A stretch of 64,000 nt of DNA from Macrostomum lignano (taxonomy: Eukaryota), in contig NIVC01000173.1 in NCBI GenBank assembly GCA_002269645.1, positions 682,001-746,000 on the forward strand, read 5' to 3'. Below, piece after piece: positions 33,556 to 37,636 of the stretch. Position 1 is the first letter of the stretch. The number at the start of each line of letters is the position of its first letter. A program made the translations under genes and the position numbers. The notes below the pieces were generated by a model. The model did no database searches. It was not told where the DNA came from and saw only the letters and a program-made list of their open reading frames with translations.

Positions 33556-36500
33556 ATGTCAACGAACTCCTGCCAACTCAAGCCGCAGTACTCTAAAGGA
33601 CTCATAATTGTATTCGACGATGCCCATTGGATAGCGGATACTGTGGCCAATTTGCAGCACCAATGTCCCGATCTGCCGGTGACCTACTGGCACGCCGCCG
33701 AGATGGCCATCGACGCTGACAGTGAGCCGCCCGAAGCGCTGTACTTCGCCTTCTGCTCAGCCTCGGCTGCTCAGCGACAGGCGCCGAATTCGTTTGAAGC
33801 GTTTCGCGTCATCCTCGGCTGGCTGACCGCCTGGGACCGGCGGGTTGTCAATGGCAACGTCATGGAAATGGAGGGCAGCAAAACGGAGCAAATTCGACTG
33901 GTGAGCGATCGAGCGTTTGAAGCATTTCTCCAATACCCAAATGGCAATTAAAAGCAATAATATTACCGTTCTGGCTGCGTCGGATTGCTTGTTGAAAATA
34001 TTCGGCTGAAATAGGAAATTATTAATAAATATGCCTTCAGCCACATCGTCCCGCAACCATCCAAGACGTAAGCAATTCTGTCCATTCCGCAGACTCCTGC
34101 CAATACTGTACTCAGGCTGTAATACTGTACTCACAGTCTTGGATGATGCTAGAGTCACAGTCTTGGATGATGTTAGAGTCACAGTCTTGGATGATGCTAG
34201 AGTCACATTCTTGGATGATGCTAGAGTCACATTCTTGGATGATGCTAAAGTCACAGTCTTGGATGATGCTAGAGCCACAGTCTTGGATGATGCTAGAGTC
34301 ACAGTCTTGGATGATGCTAGAGTCACAGTCTTGGATGATGCTAGAGTCACATTCTTGGATGATGCTAGAGTCACATTCTTGGATGATGCTAAAGTCACAG
34401 TCTTGGATGATGCTAGAGCCACAGTCTTGGATGATGCTAAAGCCACAGTCTTGGATGATGCTAAAGCCACAGTCTTGGATGATGCTAAAGCCATATTGGA
34501 TGATGTTAAAGTCAGTATTGGATGATGCTAAAGTCAGTATTGGATGATGATGCTAGAGTCACAGTCTTGGATGATGTTAGAGTCACAGTCTTGGGTGATG
34601 TTAGAGTAACAGTCTTGAATGATGCTAGAGTCACAGTCTTGAATGATGCTAGAGTCACAGTCTTGGATGATGCTAGAGTCACAGTCTTGAATGATGCTAG
34701 AGTCACAGTCTTGGATGATGCTAGAGTCACAGTCTTGAATGATGCTAGAGTCACAGTCTTGGATGATGCTAGAGTCACAGTCTTGGATGATGCTAGAGTC
34801 ACAGTCTTGGGTGATGTTAGAGTAACAGTCTTGAATGATGCTAGAGTCACAGTCTTGAATGATGCTAGAGTCACAGTCTTGGGTGATGTTAGAGTAACAG
34901 TCTTGAATGATGCTAGAGTCACAGTCTTGGATGATGTTAGAGTCACAGTCTTGGGTGATGTTAGAGTCACAGTCTTGAATGATGCTAGAGTCACAGTCTT
35001 GAATGATGCTAGAGTCATAGTCTTGAATGATGCTAGAGTCACAGTCTTGGATGATGCTAGAGTCACAGTCTTGGATGATGCTAGAGTCACAGTCTTGGAT
35101 GATGCTAGAGTCACAGTCTTGGATGATGTTAGAGTCAGTCTTGAATGATGCTAGAGTCACAGTCTTGGATGATGCTAGAGTCACAGTCTTGGATGATGCT
35201 AGAGTCACAGTCTTGGATGATGCTAGAGTCAGTCTTGAATGATGCTAGAGTCACAGTCTTGGATGATGCTAAAGTCACAGTCTTGGATGATGCCAGAGTC
35301 ACAGTATTGGATGATGCTAAATTCACAGTCTTGGATGATGCTAAAGTCAGTATTGGATGATGTTAGAGTCACATTCTTGGATGATGTTAGAGTCAGTCTT
35401 GAATGATGCTAGAGCCACAGTCTTGGATGATGCTAAAGTCACAGTCTTGGATGATGTTAGAGTCACAGTCTTGGATGATGCTAGAGTCACAGTCTTGGAT
35501 GATGCTAGAGTCACAGTCTTGGATGATGCTAGAGTCACAGTCTTGGATGATGCTAGAGTCACATTCTTGGATGATGCTAGAGTCACATTCTTGGATGATG
35601 CTAAAGTCACAGTCTTGGATGATGCTAGAGCCACAGTCTTGGATGATGCTAAAGTCAGTATTGGATGATGCTAAAGTCAGTATTGGATGATGCTAAAGTC
35701 AGTATTGGATGATGCTAAAGTCAGTATTGGATGATGCTAGAGTCAGATTTTTATGATGCTTAAGTCACAGTATTGGATGATGCTGAAGTCAGTATTGGAT
35801 GATGCTAAAGTCAGTATTGGATGATGCTAAAGTCACAGTAGATGGCAATAGAATACTTCAAGAGCAAAGGCATGCAGATGCGCGATAAGAGATAAGCAAA
35901 TATAGAGAGCTCTTTGTACTGCTCAATGCAAAAATCTCAAAAGTACACATATTAAGTCCTCAGTCAACGAGCAAGCACCGCAAGCAACGCGTCATCTGCA
36001 CTTCGTTTCATTTTCTCTCTGTCTCTCTTGCTTATCTCTATTTTTTGGACTGCAGCAGGTGCATGACATTAATTAGCACCGCGGATTCAACAGATAAGAA
36101 TTGTTAACACGAAAGATCAGAAAGCTACCGACCAAGCATAGGCAAGATCAGGGTGCGTTGAAAATACGTTACGCTAACGTTTGCCATTAATATCTAGATA
36201 GGTAAAAACTATTTCTTCTTTCGGAACATACAATAAAGAAAACTTTTTTTTAAAATCGCGATGGAAACCATTTAACCCGAGTCCCGACAGAGCAAAGAAC
36301 ACTATATCGACTTTCATATATATAGCTCATATGCCCTGTTATCGAAGTGGCAGTCGGTTTTCCAAACAACGAGGAGACAGTGGCGCCAACCAAGAGACAG
36401 GGGGGCGCCCACCAAGAGACAGGGGCGCCCACCAAGAGACAGGGGCGCCCACCAAGAGACAGGGGGCGCCCACCAAGAGACAGGGGGCGCCAACAAGAGA

Positions 36501-37636
36501 CCGTGCATGTAAAGACCATAAAGATTACATATCATCAAACTCCTCCAGTGCCGAAAAGTCGGGCTCCCAGTACCCAGAACTCTCATCGGCACTGTTAGTG
36601 TCAAGACTTCGTCACTTGTATCGGCACAGCTTCCGGCGCCCTTCATCCTGAAACCGGATCGAGGCGGTTCTGGCAGCGGAGTTCGACTATTCGACACCGT
36701 AGACGAATTCGAGTCTGGGCGGACGACCTATTTCGTGGAGAATCCCTGTCCAACTGGGCTATACCTGTTCCAGGAGTACCTGGATAGGAGTTGCGGATTC
36801 TATCGAGCGGAATTTGTCGGGAAGAAGTTTCTGTACCTCGCTGAAATATTGGTCAGTCTTTTATAGTTGCTGTGAGAGTTTGACTACTTACAAGTAGAAA
36901 GTATAGAGTATGGTGCATGCATGCAGATATAGACTGAAATCTTTTGCATTCAACAGGTGGACCCAGAGAGTCCGGGCTTCAACATGTGCCCCTGCGCCAA
37001 CAAGGTGGAAAACTATCGCCTGTCGCGGCAATTTGAGCACCCGATTCGGCAGCGCATGGAGCAGTTCATTCAGGTGAGTGTTGTCTGTCTGTCTGTCTGT
37101 CTGTCTGTCTGTCTGCATGTCTATGTGTCTGTCTGTCTGTCTGCATGCCTGTCTGTCTGTCTGTCTGTCTGTCTGTCTCTGTCTGTCTGTCTGTCTGTCT
37201 GTCTGTCTGTCCATCTATCTATCTATCTATCTATCATCTATCTATCTATCAATCTATCTATCTATCAATCTATCTATCTATCTATCTATCTATCTATCTA
37301 TCTATCGATCTATCTATCTATCTACCTATCTATCTATCTATCTATCTATCTATCTATCTATCTATCTATCTATCTATCTATCTATCTATCTATCTATCTA
37401 TCTATCTATCTATCTATCTATCTATCTATCTATCTATCTATCTCACACAGGCTACAGACGCAGAGAACATAGCATTTGAGTTCATCAGGAACTCATCAGG
37501 CCAAGCCTGCGTGATAGACATCAACAGCAACACCTCCTTCAACGTCGAGGCCGAGAAGCACTACAGCATGCCGTCAGGATTCGAGTCCGTGGCCACCTAC
37601 CTGCTGCAGTTGCTGGGCTGCAGACCAGAGTCCTGA
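33556..37636 (+). CDS. Bacterial-type RimK/glutathione-synthase-like ATP-grasp ligase, 4 exons, 316 aa
   Basis: join(33556..33900,36549..36851,36957..37073,37451..37636) = 951 nt, three phase-0 GT-AG introns, no stops. Motifs: EPPEALY..CSASAAQR, LGWLTAWDRRVVNG..MEMEGSKTEQ, CRKVGLPVPRT, PFILKPDRGGSGSGVRLF, LFQEYL, YRAEFVGKKFLY, PGFNMCPC, FEFIRNSSGQACVIDINSNTSFNVEAE. Exon 2 is missing from the ORF track. Confidence 0.88.
34135..35840. repeat. Minisatellite, 24-bp unit GTCACAGTCTTGGATGATGCTAGA (ATP-grasp intron 1)
   Basis: About 70 tandem units. Source of the TVLDDARV / LASSKTVT ORFs. Confidence 0.96.
36375..36500. repeat. Short minisatellite, 20-21 bp unit CACCAAGAGACAGGGG(G)CGCC
   Basis: About 6 tandem copies just upstream of ATP-grasp exon 2. 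Confidence 0.9.
37082..37442. repeat. Compound microsatellite (CTGT)n(CTAT)n filling ATP-grasp intron 3
   Basis: Direct reading. Confidence 0.97.

Follow-up and report, generated by a model that had tools for sequence, protein, structure and literature searches.

The window analysed here, a stretch of 64,000 nucleotides from the genome of the flatworm Macrostomum lignano (NCBI GenBank assembly GCA_002269645.1, contig NIVC01000173.1, positions 682,001 to 746,000 of the forward strand), contains a four-exon gene whose product is, by its predicted fold and conserved ligand residues, a member of the ATP-grasp superfamily. The exons lie on the plus strand, measure 345, 303, 117 and 186 nucleotides (nt), all multiples of three, and are joined through three phase-0 GT-AG introns (gtgagc/ctccag, gtcagt/caacag and gtgagt/acacag; Table 1) into a coding sequence (CDS) of 951 nt, which starts with ATG, ends with TGA and encodes 316 amino acids (aa) with no internal stop. 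This is the structure that the first-pass annotation had read from the sequence, and the spliced product is identical (100% identity over 100% of its length) to the GenBank entry 'hypothetical protein BOX15_Mlig013055g1 [Macrostomum lignano]' (316 aa), the host contig of which is the 837,608-bp NIVC01000173.1; the gene model is already public in the GenBank annotation, where it has no assigned function. The mechanical list of open reading frames (ORFs) splits the gene and leaves exon 2 without a correctly starting ORF of its own, as the same annotation had noticed. A second copy within the window is not found by tblastn.

The pre-ATP-grasp domain at the N terminus, with the SAS..R and LGWLTAWDRRVVNG blocks and Lys109, comes from exon 1; strands and helices are predicted at residues 16-106 of an AlphaFold2 model. 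The central ATP-grasp domain resides in exon 2 and comprises Lys150, the Gly-rich loop PDRGGSGSG, the Q190-E-Y hinge and R201-AEF, while exon 4 contributes the predicted Mg-binding residues E265, D278 and N280 as well as E290, all four of which are invariant in the 99-sequence family alignment described below. The minisatellite of intron 1 yields spurious repeat-made ORFs of 134-245 aa on both strands, and intron 3 consists almost wholly of a (TGTC)n and (TCTA)n microsatellite (37082-37443), the (TGTC)n of which is found again at 58629-58845 of the window.

Table 1. Coordinates of the ATP-grasp gene of M. lignano, of repeats in the window and of the family loci on three contigs from the group that neighbours the animal sequences in the trees.
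Sequence	Feature	Position	Strand	Evidence or content
Window	Exon 1, aa 1-115	33556..33900	+	ATG at 33556; donor CTG|gtgagc; tblastn 100% over aa 1-115
Window	Intron 1, 2648 nt, phase 0, GT-AG	33901..36548	+	Splice sites; alignment with amphioxus
Window	24-bp minisatellite, about 72 copies, inside intron 1	34131..35839		Tandem Repeats Finder score 2593, 91% matches
Window	20-bp tandem repeat, about 6 copies, inside intron 1	36374..36501		Tandem-repeat scan
Window	Exon 2, aa 116-216	36549..36851	+	Acceptor ctccag|TGC; donor TTG|gtcagt
Window	Intron 2, 105 nt, phase 0, GT-AG	36852..36956	+	Splice sites; alignment with amphioxus
Window	Exon 3, aa 217-255	36957..37073	+	GFNMCPC loop; family-invariant G223 and C227
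Window	Intron 3, 377 nt, phase 0, GT-AG	37074..37450	+	Splice sites; alignment with Batillaria
Window	Exon 4, aa 256-316 and TGA	37451..37636	+	C-terminal part of the catalytic domain; tblastn
Window	Other mini- and microsatellite arrays	1136-2421, 4533-5046, 13479-14305, 15355-16105, 25742-27335, 39631-40881, 45006-45494, 47061-47516, 49440-50113, 56634-57224, 58513-58970		
L011	Family locus on sister-group contig	8001-9065		
L012	Family locus on sister-group contig	8001-9335		
L013/L014	Family locus on sister-group contig	10001-11107		

The AlphaFold2 model, built on a 99-sequence family alignment, has the three-domain ATP-grasp architecture (predicted local distance difference test, pLDDT, 91.8; predicted template modelling score 0.90). 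Compared with the PDB by Foldseek, it gives 704 matches at E<=1e-3, the top ones all being ATP-grasp ligases that align over about 300 of the 316 residues; the best of them, ArgX, LysX, RimK, PsnB/PruB and Ddl, reach a probability of 1.0 and template modelling (TM) scores of 0.57-0.79 at 12-18% identity. When the PDB is searched with the family profile, ArgX, LysX and RimK are recovered at about E 1e-8, whereas single-sequence searches of Pfam, NCBIfam and the PDB return only generic ATP-grasp matches below threshold (e.g., PF02655 with 14.9 bits against a curated cut-off of 23.2). All of the ATP-grasp core motifs listed by the first-pass annotation are present (S108-K109..Q112, P146-FILKPDRGGSGSG-159, Q190-E-Y, R201-AEF and D278-I-N280), and the blocks PP..Y..SAS..R, LGWLTAWDRRVVNG, GFNMCP and NTSFNVEAE agree with the consensus of the 99 family members. 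Sixteen columns are invariant across this alignment, which contains the M. lignano query itself, and they include K109, K150, G154, G157, Q190, E265, D278 and N280. By analogy with the ATP-grasp family in general, K109, K150, G154-G157, Q190, E265, D278 and N280 are the predicted ATP/Mg ligands. Fold, PDB matches and conserved residues thus bear out the assignment to the ATP-grasp enzymes.

The chemistry of such an enzyme would be the standard ATP-grasp reaction, ATP-dependent amide-bond formation. By analogy, Mg-ATP would be held between the central and C-terminal domains by Lys109/Lys150, the Gly-rich loop, the Q190-E-Y hinge and E265/D278/N280, the carboxylate of the substrate would be phosphorylated to an acyl-phosphate, and this would be coupled to an amine to give an amide or peptide bond together with ADP and Pi. 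The nearest models by fold suggest that the enzyme may couple two amino acids to each other, or attach an amino acid to a protein or peptide at its C-terminal carboxylate or at that of a side chain.

By its sequence relationships, the protein is a member of an uncharacterised and predominantly bacterial family that is distant kin of RimK, LysX and ArgX. A profile search of 1.84 billion cluster representatives (predicted proteomes) finds 908 members at E<=1e-3, and a GTDB scan finds carriers in at least 564 bacterial species genomes, among them Actinomycetota, Alpha- and Gammaproteobacteria, Chloroflexota, Bacillaceae, Cyanobacteria, Bacteroidota and Nitrospira; no donor lineage stands out, every GTDB bacterial match being 29-39% identical to the M. 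lignano protein. In the single-sequence search the nearest non-animal relatives equal the protein in length and are of bacterial or metagenomic origin. Some of them are labelled 'alpha-L-glutamate ligase' and others 'ATP-grasp domain-containing protein', and they are collinear over the full length and share the signature blocks (e.g., WP_094925755.1 of Lottiidibacillus patelloidae, and proteins of Agrococcus sp. SL85 and of Stellaceae and Acetobacteraceae metagenome-assembled genomes). Membership of this labelled family is seen in E values down to 1e-35, a coverage of 84-96% and the presence of all 16 invariant columns. The bacterial members themselves, however, score only 50-60 bits on rimK_fam (TIGR00768), far below its cut-off of 143.4, and the name 'alpha-L-glutamate ligase' is therefore not evidence of function. 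Of the proposal that the gene matches a bacterial RimK-like 'alpha-L-glutamate ligase' family, the part that concerns bacterial relatives of the same length stands, while the label lacks the support of a curated model.

The runner-up match to the M. lignano protein is a protein of Branchiostoma (amphioxus) with 36% identity (E 1e-47). A profile made from these two sequences adds a second Branchiostoma entry, proteins of four Haliotis species, two paralogues of Batillaria attramentaria and two transcript-like contigs, and these further animal homologues obtain 246-378 bits against at most 199 bits for the best bacterial or metagenomic protein. One of the two contigs, the Hua sequence, comes from run SRR32833658, the published transcriptome of Hua freshwater snails (PMC12222893), which shows that a gastropod expresses the orthologue. 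Comparison of the Batillaria gene with the Hua transcript (Nei-Gojobori, 251 codons) gives a ratio of nonsynonymous to synonymous substitution rates (dN/dS) of about 0.09, with dS near saturation, and this value for two gastropod sequences suggests that function has been retained in animals. In neighbour-joining (NJ) trees of 221-271 family members, the method used for all trees here, the animal sequences, nine in all, cluster as a single clade, for which the bootstrap values are 0.98, 0.915, 0.89 and 0.90. The animal proteins also differ from the bacterial family in that about 10 residues of the Cys-rich loop are gone (CPADxCAVGDAxCP becomes CPC), in having KPD.GGSG where the bacterial family has KPNRGGKG, and in being encoded by genes with spliceosomal introns. 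Domestication of the gene peculiar to M. lignano, as first assumed, is hence contradicted by the orthologues in Branchiostoma, four Haliotis species, Batillaria and Hua.

The introns carry the argument on age. For their comparison, a six-sequence alignment was combined with exons mapped on the 22.9-Mb amphioxus chromosome and the 2.4-Mb Batillaria scaffold. Intron 1 of M. lignano (after aa 115) coincides with the amphioxus intron after aa 150 (column 152), intron 2 (after aa 216) with the amphioxus intron after aa 257 (column 261), and intron 3 (after aa 255) with the Batillaria intron after aa 230 (column 302), in each case in phase 0. The chance of three coincidences out of three is about 5e-7 if slots are uniform and rises to about 5e-3 if, in a model made severe on purpose, only 30 sites are permissible, and two of the three M. 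lignano junctions (CTG|TGC and TTG|GTG) are not MAG|R proto-splice sites. Because all three introns are common in position and phase, the intron-bearing gene therefore predates the split of protostomes and deuterostomes, and the introns were inherited from the bilaterian ancestor and not gained in the Macrostomum lineage. The amphioxus and Batillaria genes bear introns of their own as well, a mosaic among species that is expected because differential loss from an intron-rich ancestor gives such a pattern. The CDS of Haliotis rufescens is intronless (63-Mb chromosome scaffold, L009 10001-10921), whereas amphioxus, Batillaria and the flatworm have three to four introns, which reflects either complete intron loss or a retrocopy. 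On these comparisons, the animal gene probably dates at least to the bilaterian ancestor and was later lost from most animals.

The alternative that the first explanation of the gene implied is a recent or lineage-specific bacterial transfer into the Macrostomum line, followed by the independent gain of three introns. This would account for the fact that bacterial and metagenomic proteins (33-37% identity, E 1e-35) are almost as similar to the M. lignano protein as the amphioxus protein is, and for the slight preference of the M. lignano sequence for a bacterial profile hidden Markov model (HMM) described below. It conflicts, however, with the match of every intron to amphioxus or Batillaria, with the bootstrap of 0.89-0.98 for animal monophyly, with the lack of any bacterial sequence above 39% identity and with the fully host-like composition of the CDS, and it is very improbable. 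Accordingly, the view that the introns were acquired after a transfer in the flatworm line has to be abandoned, since all three are common to amphioxus or Batillaria.

Several observations nevertheless weigh against an inherited, functional bilaterian gene in M. lignano. In a leave-one-out comparison, the M. lignano protein scores 234 bits with the animal HMM against 246 bits with the bacterial one, whereas the proteins of amphioxus, Haliotis and Batillaria and the unassigned transcript clearly favour the animal HMM (336-365 versus 225-276 bits). M. lignano is thus ambiguous by HMM similarity, and it is the NJ bootstrap and the introns that carry the claim of orthology. The support for the animal clade comes from distance-based NJ trees only, and within this clade M. 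lignano branches first (0.97), in conflict with the species tree, which groups the flatworm with the molluscs; this may be due to long-branch attraction or to old, hidden paralogy. Moreover, the near-universal Arg66 of the N-domain NRxSxS motif is Phe in M. lignano, and therefore the substrate may differ or constraint may be relaxed. Finally, a second M. lignano copy in UniProt, A0A1I8IX04, is fragmentary, and stretches of it appear frameshifted. This UniRef entry of 163 aa is near-identical to parts of the gene and misses whole segments. It may represent a pseudogene, an artefact of an earlier assembly, or a paralogue or homeologue in the duplicated genome.

The substitution of Arg66, the long branch of M. 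lignano and the apparently broken second copy would also fit a decaying relic, unexpressed or non-functional, in which the frame has stayed open by chance. Such decay is hard to reconcile with a 316-codon frame that is intact over four exons with canonical splice sites, with the retention of the 16 family-invariant columns, and with a confidently predicted structure (pLDDT 91.8). In addition, of the 42 columns with a conservation of 90% or more across 241 non-animal members, M. lignano retains 34, no fewer than the other animals, which keep 28-33. A relic is therefore quite improbable.

Contamination by bacterial DNA or a chimeric assembly has nothing in its favour beyond the bacterial type of the family. 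The gene contains three spliceosomal introns with host-type tandem repeats, it lies on an 837-kb contig with animal genes on both sides, and its intron-sharing orthologues reside on chromosome-scale scaffolds of other animals. The upstream neighbour, on the minus strand, is a histone-fold CBFD_NFYB_HMF gene, and other exons in the window encode a tyrosinase, an Rpb2-type RNA polymerase subunit, a ubiquitin-conjugating enzyme (UBC E2) and a dynein heavy chain. The guanine-cytosine content (GC) of the CDS, 0.556, and that of its third codon positions (GC3), 0.68, fall inside the range of the neighbouring exons (GC 0.45-0.59, GC3 0.45-0.77), with introns at a GC of 0.36-0.43. We therefore agree with the first-pass annotation that this is a genuine host gene, and the probability of contamination is vanishingly small.

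Further features of the window and of the orthologous loci were observed in passing. The satellite arrays listed last among the window features in Table 1 lie mostly within introns of neighbouring genes and give rise to repeat-derived ORFs of 110-530 aa on both strands, which are not genes. The annotated Batillaria protein BaRGS_00010373 (JACVVK020000051.1; L003 12836-12863) skips the conserved GGVYRAEFVG motif, which can be read in another frame at the annotated donor site and is in frame in the Hua transcript; the Batillaria model or assembly therefore has a frameshift or indel. The Logan contig of run SRR12008146 (1617 nt; L004 412-1305) encodes an unbroken 297-aa orthologue that groups with the gastropod sequences. 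In amphioxus (L002 10973-13662), a gene with an RNA_polI_A34 domain lies on the same strand inside the 4.4-kb first intron of the X1 isoform of the ATP-grasp gene, which has a 46-aa N-terminal extension from a distant upstream exon, the conserved protein beginning at Met47.

An additional question is where the animal gene ultimately comes from. In the NJ trees the animal clade falls within the mostly bacterial family, apart from other eukaryotes, but the bootstrap for its sister group is only 0.33. Homologues do occur in distant eukaryotes: Vitrella brassicaformis (two entries) and Chromera velia have the ATP-grasp domain within fusion proteins of 806-1066 aa, and the amoebozoan Armaparvus languidus has a 423-aa family member. 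One of the chromerid fusion proteins is annotated with an FAD-binding FR-type domain. These homologues, together with the demonstrably vertical inheritance within animals, are what descent from the last eukaryotic common ancestor would offer as an explanation. However, the named eukaryotic members (animals, chromerids and amoebozoan) are monophyletic in none of 150 bootstraps, the distances that separate the sequences of Armaparvus and the chromerids from bacterial ones (0.64-0.95) are much smaller than those to animals, and no homologue from non-bilaterian animals or choanoflagellates is found among the 1.84 billion cluster representatives, so that very many independent losses would be required. 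Since the chromerid and amoebozoan sequences never group with those of animals and are nearer to bacteria, several independent acquisitions are therefore favoured over descent from the last eukaryotic common ancestor, which is unlikely.

A further layer of complexity lies in the sister group of the animal clade itself, which consists of 21 divergent sequences. Three contigs of this group are gene-dense, intron-free and rich in ORFans, with a GC of 0.50-0.63 and a coding fraction of 76-86%. The first carries an AEP_C962R primase, the small subunit of ribonucleotide reductase and an asparagine synthase, the second Rpb5 and an HMG box protein, and the third an uninterrupted Rpb1 of 1674 aa and a metacaspase. 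From these few marker genes the contigs look like large DNA viruses of eukaryotes. The animal and virus-like groups also have motifs in common: of the nine animal sequences, eight have 'CPC' (the exception is CPD in Haliotis), as do 18 sister-group sequences, while 219 of 271 family members have 'CPA', and 'KPD' is commoner than 'KPN' in both groups. Exchange with Nucleocytoviricota-like viruses could have gone either way, an early animal acquiring the gene from a giant virus or the viruses capturing it from a eukaryotic host. Against such an exchange stand the bootstrap of 0.33 for the pairing and the long branches of both groups, which make attraction likely, as well as the virus-like HMM, which gives the lowest score for each animal sequence (186-193 bits). 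Indels shared between animal and virus-like sequences were not found, IMG/VR contains no relative of the virus-like clade in a search with a three-sequence alignment, and no close structural relative exists among the BFVD viral structures; moreover, the viral nature of the contigs is judged from a handful of markers, and their genes lack an upstream copy of AAAATTGA, the early-promoter motif of Mimivirus. The viral link is thus a lead that may reflect long-branch attraction, and the exchange is rather unlikely.

Taken as a whole, the locus is a genuine and intact nuclear gene for a predicted three-domain ATP-grasp carboxylate-amine ligase, probably an ancient bilaterian gene that inherited its introns and was widely lost, and its most likely ultimate source is a much earlier horizontal transfer. 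For that earlier event we infer, as a plausible course, the entry of the gene from a bacterium (or large DNA virus) into an ancestor of the bilaterians. The old horizontal transfer put forward at first is not upheld in its lineage-specific form and remains reasonable as a deeper origin, with no distinct donor among relatives of 29-39% identity. Vertical inheritance, which the first-pass annotation had set against a transfer, does apply within animals, as the shared introns and the clade indicate, but the distribution is patchy and not broad.

Among known ATP-grasp systems, RimK (Escherichia coli, 4iwx/5zct), LysX (Thermus, 1uc8/3vpd) and ArgX (Sulfolobus, 3vpb) have the same three-domain fold of about 280-320 aa and lead both the structural matches (Foldseek E 1e-15, TM 0.64-0.79) and those by profile (E 1e-8). 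They share with the M. lignano protein the ATP-binding Lys, the Gly-rich loop and the E/D-x-N metal triad, the spacing of which presumably resembles that of the metal ligands annotated for RimK in UniProt. Identity is only 13-18%, however, and the M. lignano family has signatures of its own that RimK, LysX and ArgX do not show, i.e., NRxSASxHTR, LxWLxxxxRRVVNG and the invariant Cys in the GFxxCP loop. The graspetide maturases PsnB, PruB and MdnB/C also rank high by structure (Foldseek E 5e-15 to 2e-13), with weak matches to TIGR04187. On the side of the animal enzymes, only three sub-threshold generic ATP-grasp Pfam matches are obtained at E<=1, and no structure of synapsin, TTL or eukaryotic GSS is found at E<=0.01, the sequences of RIMKL and CARNS1 themselves not having been used as queries; the distinction from synapsin, TTL and eukaryotic GSS that was made at the outset holds against these models and structures.

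The surroundings of the bacterial genes were read at 80 GTDB loci (L015-L094), taking the three nearest ORFs per side with crude ORF calling and a minimum of 80 aa. The bacterial gene is mostly standalone, and no shared operon is seen on three long bacterial contigs. An SfnG-like luciferase-type flavin monooxygenase occurs in 22 of the 80 loci, in 12 of them directly downstream on the same strand, and a MetY-type O-acetylhomoserine sulfhydrylase in seven (e.g., L084 and L050 among the loci read); these two are the only recurrent neighbours. They are a hint at a link of the family to organosulfur metabolism in bacteria, too weak for the assignment of a substrate. Linkage to rpsF is not seen in the three long contigs or the 80 loci, and no recurrent small-ORF partner is found at the latter, where peptides shorter than 80 aa would escape the ORF calling.

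Specific identities were considered and set aside. Membership of the curated family of RimK alpha-L-glutamate ligases is rejected by the scores of the M. lignano protein on TIGR00768 (29.6 bits, cut-off 143.4) and PF08443 (13.8 bits, cut-off 21). LysX or ArgX is rejected by TIGR02144 (23.1 bits, cut-off 275.6) and by the absence of a LysW-like gene or a lys/arg cluster among the neighbours at the 80 bacterial loci, and a graspetide maturase by TIGR04187 (20.9 bits, cut-off 350) and by the lack of an evident precursor-peptide gene beside bacterial or animal members. The mycosporine-type ATP-grasp MysC was dropped, as its family is absent from all searches. Bacterial-type enzymes with a patchy occurrence in marine invertebrates include the shinorine/mycosporine gene set of anthozoans, to which an ATP-grasp belongs (PMC3640398). 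That set is likewise a case of a prokaryote-like family in few animal lineages; its ATP-grasp belongs to a different family, and for the M. lignano gene orthology across phyla is shown by the introns.

In the literature on this gene and on horizontal transfer of ATP-grasp genes in animals, no publication on the gene was found. A tentative and still doubtful extension of these results is that an ancestral bilaterian ligase of bacterial or giant-virus origin, surviving only in few aquatic and mostly marine invertebrates (macrostomid flatworms, gastropods and amphioxus), makes an amide- or peptide-linked metabolite or a protein modification that is novel for animals, while the bacterial family may have a connection with organosulfur metabolism. 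In practical terms the gene is of moderate value, as one more orphan enzyme with a directly testable evolutionary history. If true, this history would be a clean case of a prokaryote-like enzyme gene traced by its shared introns to the bilaterian ancestor although its present distribution is very patchy, and it cautions against taking a bacterial-type gene with introns in one animal for a lineage-specific domestication. It also draws attention to an uncharacterised ATP-grasp family that is present in 564 or more genomes of bacterial species, in several protists, on giant-virus-like contigs and in three animal phyla, has no known substrate, and for which M. lignano, a model tractable by transgenesis and RNA interference, is well suited to probing the function in animals.

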